This document shows, in pieces, positions 2,456 through 25,026 of a stretch of 64,000 bases of DNA (position 1 is the stretch's first letter; the number at the start of each line of letters is the position of its first letter). The stretch comes from Piromyces finnis finn. Taxonomy: Eukaryota; Fungi; Neocallimastigomycota. The position numbers were made by a program, and so were the translations under genes. The stretch is taken from positions 372,001 to 436,000 of the forward strand of contig MCFH01000033.1 in the NCBI GenBank assembly GCA_002104945.1, written 5' to 3'. Under the pieces are notes generated by a model that saw only the letters and a list, made by a program, of their open reading frames with translations, had not been told where the DNA came from and ran no database searches.

Positions 2456-3694
2456 TTATTCCATAAAATCATTGGAAACAGTCGCATCACATTTGCCATA
2501 GTTTTCTTGACAACCATTATCTGGTAAACAATAGTATTCGGTAGTACCACAATATCCTTCCTTTGAACAACATTGTTCATTATTTGGACATCTACCATAA
2601 CCTTCACCACATTTACCAACACTGGATTCACTGTAACATTCACCAAATTCACTTTGACAACCATTACTTAATTTACAGAAATCAGCAGCGATACCACATA
2701 ATCCTTGCTTTGAACAACACCAACCGTTAGGACAGCTACCAATACCTTCACCACATTCTGGTTCAATTGGAATACCAGAAGTTTCTTCTTCATCTTGTTC
2801 GTAATAATCATCAACGATATCATTGACACAGAGACCATAGTCGGATTGACAACCTTGACTAGTGTTACAATAGGCTTCACTTGTTCCACAATAACCATTT
2901 CTGGAACAACAATGGTTTGGATTTGGACATCTACCAAAGTCATAACCACATTCACCATGTTCAGAGACACTATTGCATAAACCAAAGTTTTCTTGACAAC
3001 CTTTAGCAATGTCACAGTATTCACTATCCTTACCACAAAAACCATCACTGTTACAACATTCACCGTTAACACAACTACCAATACCAACACCACATTCTTT
3101 TTCATTAGTACCAGCAATATTAGCTGTATTTACAATTTCATAACAATCTCCAAAGGCAGGTTGACAACCCTTTGAAATTTCACAATAAGCTTCAGAGGTA
3201 CCGCAGTAACCGTACTTTGAACAACATTTACCTACTGGACAATCCTTCATTACATCAGAACCACATTCCCTGGAATCTTCTACTTCTTCTTCATAAACAT
3301 AAACAGTTTCGGTAATCCATTCAGTAACCCATTCAACATCTTCTTCTTCTACCATTTGTTCTTCTCCACAAAGACCATAGGCACTTTGACAACCGGTACC
3401 ACAATAGGCACTTGTTTCACCACAGTAACCTTTTTTGGAACAGCATTGATATGGTTTTGGACATCTACCATAATCCTTACCACATTTACCGTTAGAGGTA
3501 GAGGCGTAACAAGAACCGTATTCTTTTTGACAACCTAAAGTATTTTCACAATGGTCACTTGTAGTACCACAGTATCCATATTGTGAACAACATTGACCTT
3601 CTGGACAAGTTCCGATACCTTTACCACAATTTGGAGCAGCAAGGGTAGTTGTTAATAAGGAAAGTGCAATACTAAGAATAGTTGAAACTTTCAT
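2456..3694 (-). CDS. Secreted chitin-binding protein with seven hevein/CBM18 modules and no catalytic domain
   Basis: N-terminal hydrophobic signal (MKVSTILSIALSLLTTTLAA). Seven CG-x-C-x-CCSxxGyCG-x-C-x-GCQ-x-G-x-C modules with acidic linkers. Intronless 412 aa. Confidence 0.93.
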   Translation of the reverse strand: MKVSTILSIALSLLTTTLAAPNCGKGIGTCPEGQCCSQYGYCGTTSDHCENTLGCQKEYGSCYASTSNGKCGKDYGRCPKPYQCCSKKGYCGETSAYCGTGCQSAYGLCGEEQMVEEEDVEWVTEWITETVYVYEEEVEDSRECGSDVMKDCPVGKCCSKYGYCGTSEAYCEISKGCQPAFGDCYEIVNTANIAGTNEKECGVGIGSCVNGECCNSDGFCGKDSEYCDIAKGCQENFGLCNSVSEHGECGYDFGRCPNPNHCCSRNGYCGTSEAYCNTSQGCQSDYGLCVNDIVDDYYEQDEEETSGIPIEPECGEGIGSCPNGWCCSKQGLCGIAADFCKLSNGCQSEFGECYSESSVGKCGEGYGRCPNNEQCCSKEGYCGTTEYYCLPDNGCQENYGKCDATVSNDFME

Positions 3695-13072: not shown

Positions 13073-15989
13073 ATGCTTACAAAACTATTTAGTACAATTT
13101 TGATATTGGGATCACTACTTTATTGTAGTGCTATATCCATTAATATGAAAGCTTTAGTTTTAACCTCAGAAAAGTATATCCAATATGATGATGTTGTAAA
13201 GTTAACTTTACAATCCTATGGTATTCCATATGATATGTATGCTTTCAATGAAAATAATATACCAAAAAGTAACTTAACTTTAGTCAACTCTGATGGTGAA
13301 CCATTATATAACCTTATTATTGTTAATGGTGGAAGTCTTTCATATGAAAATTCTGAAACTCACGCTTGGGTTAGTTATTTAACTTCTGCTCAATGGGCTT
13401 ACATTGAAGAATATGAAGCTAAATACCATGTACGTAGAGTCTCTATCGATTCCGAAATTAATATCTATAATTATATCGATTTATATGACCAAAATGATTG
13501 GGGTAAATCTGTTCCAGAACAAAAACTTATTCCAGCAGATAATGATGTTACTAAGAAGATTTTTGAAGATACCAGAGTTAAATTTACTGCTCCATTAGAT
13601 GTTAACAAGTAAGTATTTATTATATACTTTTTTTTTAAAAAAAAAAATATTAAAAACTTTGGATGGATAATGGATATTAATTAAATTGGAAAAAGAAGAA
13701 AAAAATTAAAGCACATGGATAATTTTTTGCTTATCCCTCCTAAAAGTTGTTATGAAAAATAAAAAAAAAATGTTGCTTATTTTTAAAAAATTTTTAAAAA
13801 ATTTCTAAAACTCCTCTTTTTTATTTTTTATTATGATTAAATGATTATTAACCATTTATTATTTTACAAAATTCTTCATTTTACTATAATTTAATAGTAT
13901 CTATCACACTAGAATAAAGATTACTGATGAATCTATTGTTAAACCATTCTTATACTATGATGATAATGGTTCAAAGGGTGCTGTTGCTGCTACCATCTCT
14001 ACTTTCCCAGATGGTCGTGAAAAAATGAGTTTCTACTTTGGTTTTGGTTCATGGTCTCAAAGTAGTATTATCCTTAATCACTTATGGTTAGTTTGGGGTA
14101 CTCGTAATATTTTCAATGGTTTCCGTCGTGTTTACTTCTCTGCTCATATTGATGATGTTTTCCTTTCAACAGATCTTATTGATATGAAAAAAGGTTTAGT
14201 TGAAAATGAAGAAGGATTAGCTTTCCGTACTAGTAGTAAGGATTATGACGGTATCGTTAAATTCCAAAATGATATTATGAAAAAAATGCCAGACGGTTCT
14301 TTCTTCAGAGTTGAATTAGCTTTCAATGGTAACGGTATTATTATTCAAGCTGATCCAGAATCTGCTGTTGAAGTAGATGGTGAACGTTATGTCGATTTGG
14401 AATTCGTAAAAACTCCAGGTACTGGTGATAAGCGTTGGCCAAAAGAAAATTATCAATTAAATTTCTCTGATTCTTTCTACCAAAAGGATCCATTATTCAA
14501 ATACTTTGCTAATAATGATGCCCATCAAAAGGAATTCTTCTGGAGTTCTCACACCTTCTCTCACGAAAACTTAGATAACGCCTCTAGAAGTGATGTCGAT
14601 AATGAAATTCGTGTCAACATTGAATTAGCTAAGAAATTAGGTGTTGTCGGTAAGGAATGGTGGTCTGAACATGCTATTATCACTCCACAAATTTCTGGTC
14701 TTCACAACAAGGATGCTCTTGAAATTTTCAGACAATACGGTATTACTGCTGGAACTGGTGATCTTAGTCGTCCAGCTATTACTAACCTCGAAAACCCATA
14801 CCTCCCATTCTACACTACTTTAGAATCTAGTAACTTGGAAGGTTTCCCAATTATCCCACGTACCCCAACTGAAATTTACTACATGTGTACTGATGTTGCA
14901 GAAAATACTTGGATGTACAACCATATCTACAAATCTTACTTTGGTAAGGAATCTACCTGGGAAGAAATTTCTGACCGTGAAAGTAAACGTACTTTACTTT
15001 TAATGACTAAACTTCGTCATGAAGCTCACCAATTCCACCAAGCTAACCTTCGTAATGAAGATACTGGAAAATCTCTTCTTGAAGAATGGGTCACCCCAAT
15101 TGTTAACTTGTACAATCAATACGTTGAATGGCCATTAATTTCTCTCAAGATTGATGATAATATGGAAAGCTTCAAAAAACGTGCTAATATTGAAGCTTGT
15201 GGACAAAAAGTTAAATTAATTATTAATGATAACAAGGTGACTGGTATTTCCGTTTCTGCCACTAAAGGTGATTGTACTCTTCCAGTCACTGTTCCAGTTA
15301 AAATTAATGAAGCTACTCTTCCACAAGGTATTACTCTTGAACAAGTTGGTAAGGATCCATTAACTGTCTGGGTTTCCTTAGTCAAGGGTGAAACTAAAAT
15401 AATCGAATTTGCTGAAGGTATTGAATGGAAGATTAATGAAGATACTCCAGCTTCCGCTGAACCATCTAACCCAACTACCACTACTGTTATCGGTAAAAAT
15501 TGAACAACAAGTTTAAAAATTAATTAAAAAAAAAAACTATTTTTTATTTAAAGACACTATTATTAATCAATCTTCATTTATCACTAATATTCTATATCAC
15601 TATTTATAATCAAATATTATTATTTATAAATGTTATTTTATATATATCACTACTATTTATACCCTCTTTATCACTATGATTCCTATCATTTTATTTTTTT
15701 TCTCTATGATTATCTTTTATCCAATATATAATTAGATGAACAAACAGTTATTGTTGATACTACCACCACTATAATTGATGATGTTACTACTCCAGTCACA
15801 ACAACAACAACAACTACTACTACTACTACTACAACTACTACTCCAGTCACAACAACAACAACAGCTACTACTACTACTACAACTACTACTACTACTACCG
15901 CAACTCCAACTTCATCTACACAAAATTGTGATCAATATAAATTACAAATTCTTAAATACATTAAATGCATATTAAACATTAAAATCTAA
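13073..15989 (+). CDS. Agd3/CE18-like secreted polysaccharide deacetylase, paralog 1; exons 13073-13608, 13898-15492, 15736-15989
   Basis: Signal peptide; motifs RRVYFSAHIDD, FWSSHTFSH, ITPQISGLHN, GDLSRP, PRTPTEIYY and FHQANLR match the Aspergillus Agd3 family from memory. Introns 13609-13897 (GTAAGT..AG) and 15493-15735 (GT..AG) restore colinearity with paralog 2 (DVNNIYHTR vs DVNGIYHNR; TTVIDEQ vs TTVIDEP). A Thr-rich linker is followed by TQNC and a non-CBM tail. Confidence 0.85.
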
Positions 15990-16620
15990 TCAAGCTAAAT
16001 GAATATAAATCTAATTATAAATTATCCAAATATTTTTATTATTAAAAATGTTATATAAATTAATGATTTATTAAATATATCATATACTATTTGATTAAAT
16101 AATATTTTTTTTATTATTTAATACCTTTTTTTTTTTTATCTCATTATTTATCTTTATTTAAAAAAAAAACTTCCATATTTTAAGAAAATATATTTTTTAT
16201 TTTTTATATTAAAAAAAAAAGTATCTAGGTATAATTAAAACCTATACCTTGTGTACTTTTTTTTTTTTTAGTTCCATTCATTCTATTCATACTAAATATA
16301 TATAATTTTTTTTTATTAAAAATTATTTTAAATAGAGAAAAAAAAAATCAATATTTTTAATTTTTATATTTTTTTTTTTTAAAAAAAAAGCCTATATAGA
16401 TTTTTTTTTTTAATTAAAAAAAAAAAGTATACTATTTTTTAATATAATAATTTTTACACGTTTATAAACTTTTTTAAATAAAAGTAATCTAAAAAAATAT
16501 ATAAAAAGTAAGATTATTTTTAAAAGTGTTTCTTAAAGATGTCCATAAGAATTTGTAAAAAAAAATTTTTTTTTTTTGAAACTTAATGAATCCTAATTAA
16601 AAAAAAAAAAAAAAAAAAAA

Positions 16621-16689
16621 ACGAAGCGTATTAAAAAATGTGATATTTTTTTTCAATAAAATGGCTGGAATGATGATTACCCTTCATAT
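16621..16689 (+). mobile_element. Possible left remnant of the oldest LINE relic (layer 0)
   Basis: aagcgtatt...atgtgatatt...tggaatga loosely matches 19811-19850 (KRIKKCDIF..WND vs NRIWDGDFPNSWNE). Weak. Confidence 0.35.
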
Positions 16690-16729
16690 TCAACGATGGT
16701 GATTCGTCCTGAATCAGTAGAAAATCAGA

Positions 16730-17392
16730 TAGAAATAATAATATTAGTAATGATAGCAATAGTGAAGATAATAATTCTAATTTAGATAGTAATTTAGTTA
16801 ATGATAGTAATAGTTCTAATAATCCGGTGAATATTAATGTGTATGATTATTCTAGTGTGTGCAGTAAAATATTTAAATTCCTTCTTGGGGGAAGAAGTTT
16901 TAACAATATCAATTACAATTCAAGGGAATGGAAAGAACTTTGTAAGCGTCAGATTCAATCTGGTACTAACGAAGGAACACCATTCTTGACGGTAACCGCG
17001 GAACTTCTAACCAAAATCATGCCTTTTGCTATTGGCCAGCAATGGTCAATGTTCAAAAGGTTTGAAGCAACATCCAAGAGCGTCAATGCTGAAGAAACAG
17101 TAAGACAGGCCAGGAGGGCCAGCGCAACCAATGGAGATCATAATTTTGTCCCATGATAAAATTTTGATCTTTGGCTCGGTGTCCCATTGGAAGTCAAATA
17201 CAATTATTATACTTTAGTATGATAGTGGCTTTCTTACTTTAATTAAAATTACTAGAATACATTATACCCAATTTTTATTCATTTGTGTTTATTTAAACAT
17301 ATTTTTTTTTATTTTTATTTTATTTTAATTTTTATATTACATGTATTATAATTTTAATTAAATTAATAATAAAGTTTAAAATATTTGATGCC

Positions 17393-17440
<48 letters not shown>
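16730..17440 (+). mobile_element. Young, heavily 5'-truncated LINE copy (layer 2a), 711 bp
   Basis: About 99% identical to 21618-22325; 45-nt poly(A) at 17396-17440; 14-bp TSD AGTAGAAAATCAGA at 16716-16729 and 17440-17453. Confidence 0.95.
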
Positions 17441-17443
<3 letters not shown>

Positions 17444-17555
17444 GAAAATCAGAACAAGAAAGATCCAGTATTTTTACTTAGCAGGAAGCCCCATTCCAAT
17501 TACTTCCTGATGGCTACACTTATCTTAGTGTTCCATTTGATAAGAATTTGTCCCT

Positions 17556-20500
17556 CCCCTTAGATGATATTCGCTCCTTCTTTATCCGTGGTATTCGATC
17601 ATGGTCAGTAAATATGCTATGGGAAAAACTCGAGGTTATTCTAGAAGATAAATTTAATTCAGTTATTAGTGTTAAATATTTTCAAACTTTCAATGATCAC
17701 TTTTTCTTAGTCAAGGTTCATGGTTCATCGAAAGATTGTATTAAAATCTTACACATGTTAAAGAAGAAACTTTCAGTTACCTCAATTTCCTTTTCAGCTC
17801 GTAGTAGAAGGAATCACAAATACACTTTTTCCACTCTCAAACGTAAAATTTTAGTTTCTAATAAACATCAACATTCTATTCAACAATCATTTCAACAATC
17901 AGTTCAACAATCAGTTCAACAATCTCATCAACAATCCGATCTTCAACAAGATCTTCAACAGGATCTTCAACAAGTTTCCCATCATGAAAATATTCCAGAT
18001 CTACAGCAAACACAATTTCAATCTCAACATTCAACAATTAATTCTAATAGTTCTATCAACTCTGATAACAGTTCAATAGTTGATAGTTCTTCAGTTTCAC
18101 AGCCATCTAGTAATAGTTCTACTTATTCCTCTGATGCATCATCCATTAATAACGATGACTTTAATAATAATAATAATAGCAACGATTCTTCCTCATCCAA
18201 CAAGCCTGATAACTTTTCTTTTTGTCTTAGTTGGAACACCAATGGGTGGAATCATGAAAAGAGAGATAGTATTAGCTATTTCACAGCTATTTTCAAACCA
18301 TTATTCTTATGTTTCCAAGAAACTGGTAATGGTTCTGGATCGAATACAGATTATCCTTGTCGTGTTACTTTGCGAAACTATAGACACTTTTTCAAGAAAG
18401 CTGACGAATCAGTTCCGGGAATGAGAGGTTTATATTTAGGTTTTCACAATTCATGTCAAGCCTCACTTGAAAACTTCTCTGGAAAGTATATTATTTCTAT
18501 TTATACTTTTAGTCTCTGGAATAGATTCAAATGCTCGATTGGTAATGTTTATATGCCTCATAGTCATCACAACATCTATGTTGATCATGCAAAGTTAGAA
18601 GTTCGCTTGTGGTTACAAACTCATTCATCCCATCCATCGATTCTTGTTGGTGATTTTAATATGTCTAAAGTAAAATTATCCAACTGGTTATCAACTAATG
18701 GATTAGGAGATTGGGAAATTCTTCCGCTTAGAGGGTCTACTATCTCTTGGACTCGAGGTGATCAATCTTCCGACATTGACCATGCTCTTATCAATTCGAA
18801 GATGAAAGATCTTATTCACTCAGGATCATTTATAAATAATTTTTATCCTGTATCAGACCATAAGCCACTTCTTATTAATGGTAAAATTATTCCTATGGAA
18901 GATTTTTCTAATGACTTTAATGTTCCTAAGAAAATTCTGAAATGGAATAGATTAAAATGTATTGAGGAAAAGGAATCTATTCTCAGTCATAATAAATTCC
19001 AAATACTTTCAGCAAAATTCAACGATCCTAATGTTTCTACAGATGAACTTTCCAAAGAGTTTACTTCAACTGCTTTTTCAATTGCAGACGAGCTCAGTAT
19101 TACTTCAGCAAATAATGTTATAAAGTCTTCATTTCATATTTCACAACAAATTTTTAATCTCCAAAAAATCAAAATGAAGTTGTATAAGAGATTTAAAAAA
19201 GAAAGAATTTATGATATAGATGAATTTATTAAAAGAATTAAAATCTACCGTAAACTCATTGATTACATCCACAAAAGATGTAATGAATTTAGGAAGCAAG
19301 AATATCTTCATTGGATTAAAACAGGATGTGAGTATATGAAGAGTCATAATCCTAAGAAGGCCTGGAAATGGATCAAGAAAACTGCAAAAATTGGAAAAGA
19401 TTCTTTCTTTATTGCTCAACCAATTAAAAATAAAAATGGAGAATTAGTTGTTGCTACGGAAGAACAACTAGATGTGTGGCATGATCATTTCGAAAATCTT
19501 GCATCAGATCCAAGTGGTGTAAGTCTTGATTTGGAGCATTGGTATGAAGAACCAACGAATAAACGTTTTTCACTTCCTATGCTTGATGAGTGGGATATCA
19601 ACCAAGATATTAGTATTGATGAAGTCAAGTCAGCTATCCTCACTACTCCAAATTATAAAGCATCAGGTCCGGATGGTATTCCAATTGAATTTTACAAAGC
19701 ATTAGTTCCATCAAGTAATGATTCTAATAATGCTACAGATAATAATTCTTCTGGTAATACTACTTCAGATAATGATGCTCATGGTTTAAATTTTATTCTT
19801 AAATTATTCAACCGTATTTGGGATGGAGATTTCCCCAACTCATGGAATGAATCCAGTATTGTTTCTATTCCTAAGAAGGGAGATTTGACAGATTGTGATA
19901 ACTATCGAGGTATATCACTTATCAATAATGGTATTAAGTTGATTTCCAAAATTGTCACCACTAGAATCTCAGAATATGGTTTAAAGAATAATTTCATTAG
20001 ACCTGAACAATTTGGTTTTCGAAAAAAGGAAGAAAGTATCAGTCTTTTCATTTCAATCCAAGAAATATGCCGTAGACGTCAATTAGATAATAAAGAGACA
20101 TATTTGGCCTTTTTAGATCTCAGGAAAGCATACGATTCAGTCCCAATCGGTAATATTCTCCATAAATTAGATTGTTTAGGAATCCGAGGTAAGAGTCTAC
20201 AATTTATCAAAAATTTATATTTAACATCTAAGGCTAATGTCAAATTAGATGGACAATTCTCGAAATCTTTTGATGTGAAGAAAGGAGTCCGTCAAGGATG
20301 CCCTCTTTCTCCTATTCTCTTTAATCTCTTTATTAATGATATATTTAAAGAGTGCGAAGATCTAGGAGTCAGTTTAGGTGACACTCGATGCTGTGGTGGA
20401 CTTTTTGCAGATGATATAGTTATTTGTGCTCCAACAAGAGGATGCTTAAAAAAGATGCTTAGAAGAGTTAATGAATGGGCATTGTATAATGAAATGGAAT

Positions 20501-22278
20501 TTGGTATCCAGAAATGTTCAACGATGGTGATTCGTCCTGAATCAATAGAAAATCAGAACAAGAGAGATCCAACATTTTACTTAGCAGGACAACCCATTCC
20601 AACTACTGATTGTTATACTTATCTTGGTGTTCCATTTGATAAGAATTTGTCCCTTAAACCAGTAATTAAAGCTCTTAATAACAAGGTTTTGAAAGGACTT
20701 TTCTCAGTCAGTAAATTCTTAAGAAATCCTAATATTCCTATTCCTTTCAAAAAACTAGTACTTAACTCACAAGTGATTAGCAGAGTTTCATACTTTGCAC
20801 CATTACTTGGATCCAACAAAGCTAGGTCTAGGATTGCTCAGAAGCATGTTAACAAAGGAATACGATGGGTTGCCGGAGTTCATAAAGCTGTATCGTTTAT
20901 ATCTTTATACTCTATTTCAAAAGATTTGAATATTCCTCCATTGTCAGCCAAATGTGCGTTAGCTCAGGTTAGATGTTTTAACAAATGGAAAAACTCAAAT
21001 TGTATTATCTCACACCTTGTCAATTACATTCCTAAATTTAGAAAATACACGTGGTGCAAATCAAGTAGGACACTTGATAAAAAATTAAAGAAACATGGAG
21101 ATGTTAAAGCAGTTAAAAACTTTTATTGGAAAGATCTCAAAGGGAATTCAATCAAAGCGCAATATTATGATGATAATAAGTTTATTGAAACTAAAGATTT
21201 TATCAAATTATGTTATGAATACCCAGAGTTTGCCTATGGCTTCTACTGGCTATTGAAAGCAAGAAGCGGATATAAGTTGGATGCTAGAGTTGCCAAAGCT
21301 GCCAAATTTGTTGATCCAGTTTGTCCTAACTACTGTCCATGTTGCAAGTGTGGAGATCAAAGTATTAAACATTGGTTATTAGATTGTCCAACATTTAGAG
21401 ATATCCGTATTAAACATTATGATTCTATAGTCCAGCTATTAAATTTTTTCAGTCAACGTAATTCCAATAGTCCTATCAATAATAATGAAATTGATAATAT
21501 CAGTAGAGATAGTAATAACAGTAATAGTAATAGTAACAATAATAATAATAACAATAGTAATAATAACAATAGTAGTAATAGTAATAATAGAAATAGTAAT
21601 AATAACAATAGTAGTAATAGAAATAATAATATTAATAATGATAGCAATAGTGAAGATAATAATTCTAATTTAAATAGTAATTTAGTTAATGATAGTAATA
21701 GTTCTAATAATCCGGTGAATATTAATGTGTATGATTATTCTAGTGTGTGCAGTAAAATATTTAAATTCCTTCTTGGGGGAAGAAGTTTTAACAATATTAA
21801 TTACAATTCAAGGGAATGGAAAGAACTTTGTAAGCGTCAGATTCAATCTGGTACTAACGAAGGAACACCATTCTTGACGGTAACCGCGGAACTTCTAACC
21901 AAAATCATGCCTTTTGCTATTGGCCAGCAATGGACAATGTTCAAAAGGTTTGAAGCAACATCCAAGAGCGTCAATGCTGAAGAAACAGTAAGACAGGCCA
22001 GGAGGGCCAGCGCAACCAATGGAGATCATAATTTTGTTCCATGACAAAATTTTGATCTTTGGCTCGGTGTCCCATTGGAAGTCAAATACAATTATTATAC
22101 TTTAGTATGATAGTGGCTTTCTTACTTTAATTAAAATTACTAGAATACATTATACCCAATTTTTATTCATTTGTGTTTATTTAAACATATTTTTTTATTT
22201 TTATTTTATTTTAATTTTTATATTACATGTATTATAATTTTAATTAAATTAATAATAAAGTTTAAAATATTTGATGCC

Positions 22279-22325
<47 letters not shown>
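17556..22325 (+). mobile_element. Young, near-full-length APE-RT LINE (layer 2b), lacking the 5' UTR and the first 21 codons
   Basis: 44-nt poly(A) at 22282-22325 with AATAAA upstream; 14-bp TSD AAGAATTTGTCCCT at 17542-17555 and 22324-22337; 5' junction on a 1-nt T microhomology. Confidence 0.97.
17557..22044 (+). CDS. LINE polyprotein: putative RRM-like N-terminus, AP endonuclease, reverse transcriptase, C-terminal CCHC-type Zn motif (start codon missing in this copy)
   Basis: APE motifs SWNTNG, LCFQET, LVGDFN, DIDH, SDHKP; RT motifs GPDGIP, NYRGISL, QFGFR, FLDLRKAYD, GVRQGCPLSP, FADD, YLG; C-terminal CPCCKC..HWLLDC. Open over 1495 codons. Confidence 0.96.
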   Translation, partial: PLDDIRSFFIRGIRSWSVNMLWEKLEVILEDKFNSVISVKYFQTFNDHFFLVKVHGSSKDCIKILHMLKKKLSVTSISFSARSRRNHKYTFSTLKRKILVSNKHQHSIQQSFQQSVQQSVQQSHQQSDLQQDLQQDLQQVSHHENIPDLQQTQFQSQHSTINSNSSINSDNSSIVDSSSVSQPSSNSSTYSSDASSINNDDFNNNNNSNDSSSSNKPDNFSFCLSWNTNGWNHEKRDSISYFTAIFKPLFLCFQETGNGSGSNTDYPCRVTLRNYRHFFKKADESVPGMRGLYLGFHNSCQASLENFSGKYIISIYTFSLWNRFKCSIGNVYMPHSHHNIYVDHAKLEVRLWLQTHSSHPSILVGDFNMSKVKLSNWLSTNGLGDWEILPLRGSTISWTRGDQSSDIDHALINSKMKDLIHSGSFINNFYPVSDHKPLLINGKIIPMEDFSNDFNVPKKILKWNRLKCIEEKESILSHNKFQILSAKFNDPNVSTDELSKEFTSTAFSIADELSITSANNVIKSSFHISQQIFNLQKIKMKLYKRFKKERIYDIDEFIKRIKIYRKLIDYIHKRCNEFRKQEYLHWIKTGCEYMKSHNPKKAWKWIKKTAKIGKDSFFIAQPIKNKNGELVVATEEQLDVWHDHFENLASDPSGVSLDLEHWYEEPTNKRFSLPMLDEWDINQDISIDEVKSAILTTPNYKASGPDGIPIEFYKALVPSSNDSNNATDNNSSGNTTSDNDAHGLNFILKLFNRIWDGDFPNSWNESSIVSIPKKGDLTDCDNYRGISLINNGIKLISKIVTTRISEYGLKNNFIRPEQFGFRKKEESISLFISIQEICRRRQLDNKETYLAFLDLRKAYDSVPIGNILHKLDCLGIRGKSLQFIKNLYLTSKANVKLDGQFSKSFDVKKGVRQGCPLSPILFNLFINDIFKECEDLGVSLGDTRCCGGLFADDIVICAPTRGCLKKMLRRVNEWALYNEMEFGIQKCSTMVIRPESIENQNKRDPTFYLAGQPIPTTDCYTYLGVPFDKNLSLKPVIKALNNKVLKGLFSVSKFLRNPNIPIPFKKLVLNSQVISRVSYFAPLLGSNKARSRIAQKHVNKGIRWVAGVHKAVSFISLYSISKDLNIPPLSAKCALAQVRCFNKWKNSNCIISHLVNYIPKFRKYTWCKSSRTLDKKLKKHGDVKAVKNFYWKDLKGNSIKAQYYDDNKFIETKDFIKLCYEYPEFAYGFYWLLKARSGYKLDARVAKAAKFVDPVCPNYCPCCKCGDQSIKHWLLDCPTFRDIRIKHYDSIVQLLNFFSQRNSNSPINNNEIDNISRDSNNSNSNSNNNNNNNSNNNNSSNSNNRNSNNNNSSNRNNNINNDSNSEDNNSNLNSNLVNDSNSSNNPVNINVYDYSSVCSKIFKFLLGGRSFNNINYNSREWKELCKRQIQSGTNEGTPFLTVTAELLTKIMPFAIGQQWTMFKRFEATSKSVNAEETVRQARRASATNGDHNFVP

Positions 22326-22327
<2 letters not shown>

Positions 22328-22924
22328 ATTTGTCCCTTAGACCAGTAATTAAAGCTCTTAATTTAGTTAATAATAGTAATAGTTCCAATAATCCGATGAA
22401 TATTAATGTGTATGATTATTCTAGTGTGTACAATAAACTATTTAAATTCCTTCTTGGAGGAAGAAGTCTTAACAATATCAATTACAATTCAAGGGAATGG
22501 AAAGAACTTTGTAAGTGTCAGATTCAATCTGGCACTAACGAAGGAACATCATTCTTGACGGTAACAGCGGAACTTCTAACCAAAATCATGCTTTTTGCTA
22601 TTTGGCCAGCAATGGTCATTGAAGCAACAGCCAAGAGTGTCAATGCTGAAGAAATAGTAAGACAGACCAAGAGGGCCAGCGCAACCAATGGAGATCTTTG
22701 GCTTGGTGTCCCATTGGAAGTCAAATACAATTATTATATTTTAGTATAATGGTGGCTTTCTTTCTTTAATTAAAATGACTCGAATACATTATATCCAATT
22801 TCTATTCATTTGTGTTTATTTAAACCTATTTTTTTTTTTTTTTTAATTTTGTTTTTTTACAACATGTATAATTAAATTATTAAAAGTTCAAAATTATTTA
22901 ATGTCGTTAAAAAAAAAAAAAAAA

Positions 22925-23210
22925 TTGCCACTAATTTCATTAGACTTGAACAATTTGAATTCTGTAGCAAAAAAAAGAATGCATTAACTTTTACATTTCA
23001 ATTAAAGAAATCCAATAGAGAAGAAAAGTCTATAAGTAAAATTCATCTACCTAGATTTTTCTTCACCTTAAAGAAAGCTTTTGATTTAGATCTAACAAGA
23101 AAAATATAAAATTTTATTACAATAAAATTTTGGTAATGAAAAGTAATAGTCTTCCTTAAACTTAAAAAAAGGATTCAACTTTTTATTAGTTTATTTACAT
23201 TTAAAAAGGT
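22925..23210 (+). mobile_element. Oldest, heavily decayed LINE relic (layer 0), RT region
   Basis: aatttcattagacttgaacaatttg...catttcaattaaagaaat aligns to 19990-20066 (aatttcattagacctgaacaatttg...catttcaatccaagaaat). Translation retains FFTLKKAFD, matching the FLDLRKAYD motif. Many stops. Confidence 0.75.
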
Positions 23211-23694: not shown

Positions 23695-25026
23695 ATGACT
23701 GAAACAACATATCCTACTGCTTCAAATATAAGACTTTTAGTATCAGGTATATTGTAAAAAAATATTCGATAAAAAGAGGAAATAAAATAGAAAATAGAAA
23801 TATATATTAAAAAATAAAAAAGAAATTCAATTTCAAAATTGTTTTTTTTTTTTTTCCTTATAATTCTCATTCATAATTACTTTTTTTATTATAACAATAT
23901 ATAAACGTTTTTCTCTTTATTTTATATATTAAATTATTAAAAAATAACTTTTAATATTATGTTAATATGTTAATATATATATATTTTTTGTAAAAAAAAA
24001 AGATGTTGATGGTACATTATTAAATTCAAAAGGTCAACTCTCAGAAAAAACTATAGAGGTAATTCAAAAAGTTACCAAACAATACCCATTAGTAAAGTTT
24101 GTTATTTCTACTGGAAAATCAGAACACGCCATTCAACCTCTTCGTGACCAACTTAAACTTAATGATACTCCCAATCATCCTACTTCTTGTATTAATGGTT
24201 GTGTCATTTATAATGAAAATAACAAGGTTATTAAAGAATACATAATTCCACCAGAATCAGTCATTGATATTATTAATTTATGTGAAAATTATTTAAAAGA
24301 CAAAACCCTTTTCAGTTTTGGTTGCTATTCCAGAAATGATATGATTTTTATTAGAAAAGACTTCCATTATCATCGTTTACGCGATTTTTACAATGAAAAT
24401 ACTGTTTATATAGAAAGAGAAGAGTTCTTCCAAAGAGTTCTTTCAAGTGACATTTCTATTAATAAAATATGTATTTTTAATAAGGATATTGACGTCATTA
24501 AAGGTATATATATATATATACATAAATCATAAATATTATATATTATTATATATTGCTATGCATTTTTATTATTGTTATTACATTGTTATTATGTGTACTT
24601 TTTATTATTGATATTGTTGTTATTATTCAATTATTGATTATTAAACATTTAAATTTTATTAATATATAATATATATTTATTTTTTATATATATAAAGAAT
24701 TTAGAAAAATTAAATTAGAACCTTTTATTGAAACCAATTCAGTTTTATGTATGACCCAAACAGGTGCGGATTGTTTAGAAGTAATGCCAAAGGATGGTAA
24801 TAAAGGTTCTTCCTTAAAAAATTTATTAGAAACTTATCAATTTACTAATGATCAAGTTATTGTATTTGGTGATGGAGAAAATGATATACCTATGTTTGAT
24901 GTTAGTGCCCATGGTGTAGCTATGGAAAATGCAGTAGATTGTTTAAAAGAACATGCTAATTATATTTCAAAAAGTAACGATGAAGATGGTTTAGCTGTAT
25001 TTTTAGAAAAAGTATTCTTATCTTAA
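23695..25026 (+). CDS. Cof-type (HAD-IIB) haloacid dehalogenase-like hydrolase/phosphatase; exons 23695-23746, 24003-24503, 24698-25026
   Basis: Spliced product has motif I LLVSDVDGTLLN, motif II ISTGK, motif III K (GNKG) and motif IV FGDGENDIPMF...AMENA. Both introns are GT..AG and phase-compatible. Confidence 0.9.

Follow-up and report, generated by a model that had tools for sequence, protein, structure and literature searches.

Does a long interspersed nuclear element (LINE) of an anaerobic gut fungus insert preferentially into its own copies? The question is raised by a nest of such elements in Piromyces finnis, in a stretch of 64,000 nucleotides (contig MCFH01000033.1, positions 372,001 to 436,000 of the forward strand; hereafter the window, with positions counted from its first letter). 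A previous sequence-only reading of this DNA described a four-layer, same-orientation nest and proposed that the family prefers its own copies. In our analysis, two young copies (C1 and C2) were inserted separately into an older copy of the same family (B), which lies beside a relic of a reverse transcriptase (RT) sequence (A); another young copy (D) lies at the left edge of the window. The nest is best explained, with a probability of about 0.6, as a pile of independent insertions by target-primed reverse transcription (TPRT) of an abundant, L1-like LINE with a single open reading frame (ORF), the new copies having landed near the 5' end of an older one. The locus alone does not reject chance, and it does not demonstrate self-preference.

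The anatomy of the nest was derived from self-comparison of the window by blastn, gapped alignments and direct reading of the junctions (Table 1). Both young copies end in poly(A) and are flanked by exact 14-bp target-site duplications (TSDs). For two random 14-mers of the window the probability of identity is about 6e-5, and two exact pairs at the right boundaries, each at this probability, are therefore not a product of chance. When C1 and C2 are excised, each with one copy of its TSD, the remaining pieces of B are collinear with C2. The first two pieces read STMVIRPESVENQ and DGYTYLSVPFDKNLSL (tblastn), and the third is recovered by blastn with an identity of 97.4% across 39 bp and, in a gapped alignment, of 84.1% across 622 bp. 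In total, B has 733 bp of its own sequence, which begins at the equivalent of C2 20514, inside the RT, and lacks the equivalent of C2 20680-21677 (about 1 kb).

Table 1. Coordinates of the elements of the nest, of copy D and of the neighbouring genes in the window.
Feature	Position	Strand	Description
B, piece 1	16686-16729	+	5' end of the old, 5'-truncated copy; 95.5% identity over 44 bp to C2 20514-20557 (blastn)
Left TSD1	16716-16729	+	AGTAGAAAATCAGA, inside B piece 1
C1	16730-17439	+	710 bp, 3' end of the element; young, severely 5'-truncated; poly(A) of 44 A at 17396-17439
Right TSD1	17440-17453	+	AGTAGAAAATCAGA, exact match to 16716-16729
B, piece 2	17454-17555	+	102 bp, aligned to C2 20558-20654
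Left TSD2	17542-17555	+	AAGAATTTGTCCCT, inside B piece 2
C2	17556-22323	+	4,768 bp; young, nearly full-length; poly(A) of 42 A at 22282-22323
Right TSD2	22324-22337	+	AAGAATTTGTCCCT, identical to 17542-17555
B, piece 3	22338-22924	+	25 bp of RT, internal deletion of ~1 kb, then C-terminal coding part and 3' untranslated region; poly(A) of 16 A at 22909-22924
A	22932-23085	+	Decayed, frameshifted RT relic, ORF residues ~815-863; begins 8 bp past the poly(A) of B
D	1-1857	minus	Young copy with full-length 5' end; continues beyond the left edge of the window (3' end outside)
Agd3-like polysaccharide deacetylase gene	14025-15503, then Thr-rich linker exon to ~15950		Upstream of the nest; PF25115, E = 1e-89
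HAD-like gene	Start near 23966		Downstream of the nest
Protein with seven chitin-binding type-1 repeats	2456-3694	minus	PF00187

The copies differ clearly in age. C1 is 99.1% identical to C2 over 21618-22290 (6 of 673 aligned bases differ), and over the 5'-most 904 bp of C2 the identity to D is 99.67% (blastn). The identity of B to C2 is 91.4% and 92.2%, counting mismatches only and leaving gaps uncounted. Ranked by identity to C2, the relative ages of the elements thus run from C1 and D (99.1-99.7%) through B (91-92%) to A (~76%). The insertion points of C1 and C2 are 102 bp apart, at 44 and 146 bp from the 5' junction of B, and both lie in RT-derived sequence, at about residues 1000 and 1036 of the ORF and 45-80 residues past the FADD box. 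Contigs of other copies extend with element sequence upstream of 16729 and 17555, showing that both are 5' truncation points. At the 5' junctions of C1 and C2 there is 1 nt of possible microhomology each, and the 3' junctions are plain poly(A). C1 and C2 entered B as separate events. Across its 5' junction C2 is joined in frame to the RT fragment of B (..YTYLSVPFDKNLSL followed by PLDDIRSFF.., 17509-17600), so that the mechanical ORF begins in B at 17548; C2 carries no start codon or promoter of its own.

Much of this structure had been recognised in the sequence-only reading. Its two ~99%-identical young copies, 102 bp apart in an older copy of the same family and each with poly(A) and a 14-bp TSD, stand; only its coordinate for TSD2 was one base off. 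The host had been described as a truncated, ~93%-identical copy at 16690-22924; it is indeed older and truncated, and its start, its identity, its own length and its internal deletion are those given above. The four layers have to be reduced: C1 and C2 are parallel hits in B, and the nest therefore has three nesting levels made of four elements.

The outermost element, A, reads NFIRLEQFEF ... KKECINFYISIKEI ... KAFD, and KKECINFYISIKEI..RRK in a second frame. It aligns with C2 19989-20066 at 76% identity over 80 bp in blastn and is recovered by nhmmer with E = 0.004; its Smith-Waterman score corresponds to z = 10.6 and is reached by none of 300 dinucleotide shuffles. Pfam did not recognise the relic. 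Judged by these alignments, the right-hand part of A is a genuine RT fragment. A left half of A had also been suggested at 16621-16689. The local alignment scores of 16621-16685 are no better than those of shuffles for either DNA or protein, and this segment has no Pfam match; it was rejected. As a consequence, B abuts the 5'-most recognisable residue of A, and an interruption of A by B is not established. In addition, A matches proteins of other gut-fungal LINE lineages (P0018, P0025, P0027 and P0032) at 48.6% over 37 amino acids versus 33% over 51 amino acids for the C2 ORF. Being as close or closer to those lineages, A is not established as a member of the family; the single family claimed for all layers holds for B, C1 and C2. 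Likewise, of the claim that all insertions are co-oriented and fall in RT-coding sequence, the common orientation of the four elements (all on the + strand) and the position of C1 and C2 in RT-derived sequence of B are borne out, and the insertion of B into A is not.

The family itself can be described from C2 and D combined. The frame of C2 is uninterrupted over 1,498 codons. It encodes an apurinic/apyrimidinic (AP) endonuclease domain at about 18226-18861, N-terminal to the RT (PF03372, E = 1e-7, 32.4 bits against a cut-off of 24.5; query 18214-18900), an RT domain (RVT_1, E = 1.3e-35, residues 774-1029, 19867-20634) and, near the C-terminus, a CCHC motif of the form CX2CX7HX4C (21334-21387). 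Human L1 ORF2p is the best solved-structure match to the C2 ORF (E = 1e-32), followed by R2 proteins (1e-18). D supplies the 5' end, with two tandem 124-bp monomers (1611-1857), an 891-nt 5' untranslated region (UTR) and a start codon at ~966, which gives 21 codons more than C2. Because the 5' end of D is complete, the full-length element can be set at ~5.7 kb, with one ORF and 124-bp 5' monomers, and what is missing from C2 is confined to the 5' UTR and the initial ~21 codons. The family has the hallmarks of AP-endonuclease-type elements without long terminal repeats (non-LTR): poly(A) 3' ends, variable 5' truncation with a different truncation point in every copy, TSDs and no LTRs. No separate ORF1 was found in the 891-nt 5' UTR, where the longest ATG-started ORF has 58 amino acids, and the two-ORF architecture of the strict L1 clade is absent. 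The term L1-like here denotes resemblance only. The closest protein relatives of the ORF come from anaerobic gut fungi (Orpinomyces and Neocallimastix sources), with a maximum of 70% identity in the protein search.

Residues 1-225 of the ORF (17548-18220), ahead of the endonuclease, comprise a short beta-alpha-like segment (..FIRGIRSW..FFLVKVHG..) and Gln-rich 12-nt repeats. No Pfam match was obtained for this region, which may represent an ORF1-like RNA-binding module fused to ORF2. The C-terminal part of the ORF contains an Asn/Ser-rich stretch of low complexity (21480-21700 in C2, 16729-16751 in C1) that appears hypervariable among copies, since it is here that contigs from the DNA run and from gut metagenomes part ways. 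Meanwhile, several DNA and RNA contigs match from 19989 on and differ just upstream (..DRISKYVLFL versus ..TRISEYGLKNN). Position 19988 marks a subfamily-variable patch in the RT, and the similarity of relic A begins at the same place.

The abundance of the family bears directly on how the nest is to be read. Logan contigs of four runs, among them a DNA run of the same organism, were placed on 16480-22479. From the same-organism DNA run, 9,986 contig pieces fell on these 6 kb. The summed word depth, which is not a copy number, was 2.4-7.1 x 10^5 over most of the element and ~7 x 10^4 in the low-complexity stretch near 21480-21679; the left bin, which is unique sequence, had a depth of 14. These depths point to a variable family of very high abundance. 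RNA runs contain it at 99% identity, including full-length 5' continuations, which is consistent with transcription of the family or with carry-over of DNA. The family is also present in the two gut metagenomes; searches for exact matches to its 3' end or its RT target region gave none in metagenome contigs, prokaryote genomes or viral contigs. Many single contigs of the DNA run carry an internally deleted element (20670>21726, 18305>19975 and 19691>20110), some with filler bases at the joint. Deleted derivatives like B seem to be common in the genome.

From these observations a sequence of events can be proposed. The relic RT fragment A would already have been present when B, the older copy of the family, went in at its 5' edge or right beside it. 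At some point B would have lost about 1 kb internally, and much later C1 and C2 would have entered B separately, each leaving a long poly(A) tail after a staggered cut of 14 bp. If there is a regularity, it may be that older copies are hit near their 5' end, where full-length copies carry the 5' monomer. Both young copies lie in the first 146 of the 733 bp of B, for which the probability calculated from the coordinates is ~0.04, or 0.007 if the ~1-kb deletion came later. B itself was placed at the 5' edge of A, and the pile extended toward the upstream gene. The location in RT-coding sequence is probably incidental, because B happens to begin inside the RT and both hits are near its 5' end.

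The 5' monomer offers a candidate for what might be recognised. TSD1 and TSD2 agree with one and the same 13-nt stretch of the monomer, AGTAGAAAGAATT, over their initial 8 and 7 nt, respectively; the positions of the element that do as well in such a prefix match amount to 0.8% for TSD1 and 2.5% for TSD2. In addition, site 1 of B (AGTAGAAA) is closer to the monomer than the young consensus (AATAGAAA) is. AGTAGAAAGAATT is therefore a possible target word of the endonuclease, carried by the element itself. A weak preference of the endonuclease for a motif borne by the monomer would be the most likely contributor to the pile, the remainder being due to the high abundance of the family and the tolerance of insertions in dead LINE DNA. 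A stronger version is that the endonuclease prefers the monomer motif around AGTAGAAAGAATT. New copies would then stack on older 5' ends as on a landing pad, and look-alike words near truncated 5' junctions, such as those in the RT fragment of B, would serve as secondary sites. Alternatively, stacking would be set by position and not by sequence, with new copies directed to the outermost ~150 bp on the gene side of whatever had inserted before. We put this version forward tentatively and think it unlikely. Two simpler candidates were tried and rejected. An A-rich or purine-rich sense strand does not account for the co-orientation, since the element has 0.347 A and 0.341 T and AGAA-type words are equal on both strands. 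Nor is a short target word sufficient for insertion: the 56 kb of non-LINE DNA contain 16 copies of AGTAGAA and 36 of AAGAATT, none of them with an insertion.

Several observations weigh against landing by preference near the 5' ends of older copies. Copy D lies ~15 kb from the nest in the opposite orientation to the nested copies, and its 5' flank is AT-rich, non-LINE intergenic DNA, ~600 bp from the gene for the chitin-binding protein. The family inserts outside LINE DNA too and is not confined to clusters. The sequence-only reading had stated that ~50 kb of AT-rich intergenic DNA in the window is free of such insertions; the 5' end of D lies in just such DNA, which removes the contrast underlying its argument for enrichment. 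As for the monomer, the window as it was before the insertions has 41 other sites whose resemblance to the 26-nt monomer template equals that of site 1, and all of them are empty. Between site 1 and site 2 the register of the match to the monomer shifts by 6 nt, so that a fixed position of the nick relative to the motif fails. A sequence preference of the endonuclease for the monomer motif, one of the mechanisms suggested earlier, is thus possible and at most weak: the match of the TSD prefixes lends it some support, and the equally good empty sites and the shifted registers count against it. In addition, no contig bridges any junction of the nest; the contigs are too fragmented and are unable to cross the 42-44 nt of poly(A). 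Finally, the regularities were all spotted post hoc, in no more than two or three events at a single locus.

The most serious rival is that insertion is near-random and that the family occupies a large share of the genome, so that many new copies land in old ones; hits in dead LINE DNA would moreover be harmless and kept, and hits in compact DNA flanking genes would be purged. With so abundant a family in the DNA run, some self-nests are expected by chance, and under uniform insertion an appreciable part of the new copies would fall in family DNA. Before the arrival of C1 and C2, the family made up ~5% of the window, which has two or three young insertions. Two hits in one fragment of 0.7-1.7 kb have a probability of ~1e-4 to 1e-3 for a given window; however, ~1,000 windows of this genome were surveyed, and the family is abundant. 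By a rough estimate that supposes uniform insertion, 1,000-2,000 young copies and a genome of tens of Mb, about 0.1-2 double hits within 100 bp in family DNA would be expected genome-wide. The common orientation of two or three events adds little (P = 0.125-0.25), simple target words are equal on both strands of the element and common in non-LINE DNA, and D went into DNA other than LINE. What speaks against pure chance with retention is that neither hit lies beyond the first fifth of B and that both TSD prefixes are present in the monomer. Overall, we regard it as doubtful, though well worth considering. An improbable alternative is a hot spot in the RT gene, in which the endonuclease would recognise a ~110-bp sequence (equivalent to C2 20544-20655) whatever the truncation point of the host copy. 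It would explain two hits 102 bp apart in this region; however, TSD1 and TSD2 differ in sequence, and the intact region at C2 20544-20655, the sole one that can be examined because that of D is outside the window, has no insertion.

Guidance by homology, in which RNA or complementary DNA of the element pairs with a resident copy and directs integration, was another of the three mechanisms offered by the sequence-only reading, silenced chromatin being the third. Co-oriented copies of the same family are what it would produce, but the truncation points are unrelated to the target positions: C2 and C1 start at ~955 and ~5,015 of the element, and their targets are equivalent to ~4,050 and ~3,950, respectively. 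With 1 nt of microhomology at the 5' junctions and plain poly(A) at the 3' junctions, and since conversion or register-matched junctions would be expected rather than nests flanked by TSDs, this mechanism is very improbable. A mis-join of repeat copies during assembly is more improbable still. The family is of high copy number and junction-bridging reads or contigs are lacking, but the logic of the TSDs makes an artefact very unlikely: two different perfect 14-bp duplications surround poly(A)-tailed units, and B becomes collinear after their removal. No empty-site joint was found among the joints listed from the Logan contigs. The pile of independent TPRT insertions near the 5' end of B remains our preferred account.

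How does this nest compare with known systems? Human and other mammalian LINE-1 insertions by TPRT are marked by poly(A), variable 5' truncation, TSDs of 7-20 bp and 1-nt microhomology at the 5' end. The gut-fungal LINE shares these LINE-1-type hallmarks as well as the AP endonuclease, the RT and a Cys-rich C-terminus; unlike LINE-1, it has a single ORF without a separate ORF1. Its nick sites on the bottom strand, ...TTTTCTACT/G and ...AAATTCTT/A, also differ from the TTTT/AA of LINE-1, and its 124-bp 5' monomers recall mouse L1 more than human L1. Like the site-specific LINEs of the R1, R2 and Tx1 type, it reuses a small target region and forms co-oriented stacks. In contrast to those elements, the two target sites of the nest, 102 bp from each other, differ in nucleotide and in TSD, and D occupies unrelated DNA, which is not strict site specificity.

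Self-nesting has been described for Zepp and Zepp-like L1 LINEs of green algae (Chlorella, Coccomyxa, and ZeppL of Chlamydomonas), in which, according to the passages on these elements in PMC8226300 (citing Higashiyama et al.), new copies enter existing ones and form co-oriented nests rich in 5'-truncated 3' ends. C1 and C2, in the same orientation inside the older copy B of their family, resemble this pattern. Zepp and ZeppL form one centromeric or telomeric cluster per chromosome and are absent elsewhere, whereas D lies in ordinary intergenic DNA and the nest between ordinary genes; the likeness drawn here is one of nesting behaviour. Among fungi, Cnl1 of Cryptococcus is a non-LTR element that builds subtelomeric arrays of its own copies and fragments and can hit genes (bioRxiv 10.1101/2021.08.11.455996). 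The gut-fungal LINE is likewise a self-nesting fungal non-LTR element, and neither is exclusive to its own copies. Unlike the Cnl1 arrays, the gut-fungal nest lies at a genic locus, and the 64-kb window contains no TTAGGG-type telomeric repeats. With Zepp and Cnl1 already known, nests of this kind are no novelty; for Neocallimastigomycota, however, a search of the literature found no description of nested LINEs.

The nest is a clean and well-dated example of nested TPRT. Were the preference to hold across the genome, self-piling LINEs that limit the damage they cause would be known from anaerobic gut fungi as well as from green algae (Zepp) and Cryptococcus (Cnl1). Such a strategy would be sensible in a gene-dense genome with 80-87% AT in its intergenic DNA, and it would help to explain the formation of repeat islands in gut-fungal genomes, which are hard to assemble. 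If, in particular, copies used the 5' ends of older ones as landing pads or stacked at their edges, this would amount to a safe-haven strategy that reinforces itself, in a fungal genome both compact and extremely rich in AT.

The setting of the nest is otherwise ordinary. Intergenic DNA of the window has 13-20% GC and coding islands have ~30% GC. The nest is situated between the Agd3-like deacetylase gene and the HAD-like gene, and the spacer between the two is ~1.8 kb once LINE DNA is subtracted. A run of 23 A is found at 16599-16621, 65 bp upstream of the 5' junction of B; it is either plain low-complexity DNA or possibly what is left of a further retroposed fragment, namely its tail, on the side of the pile that faces the gene.

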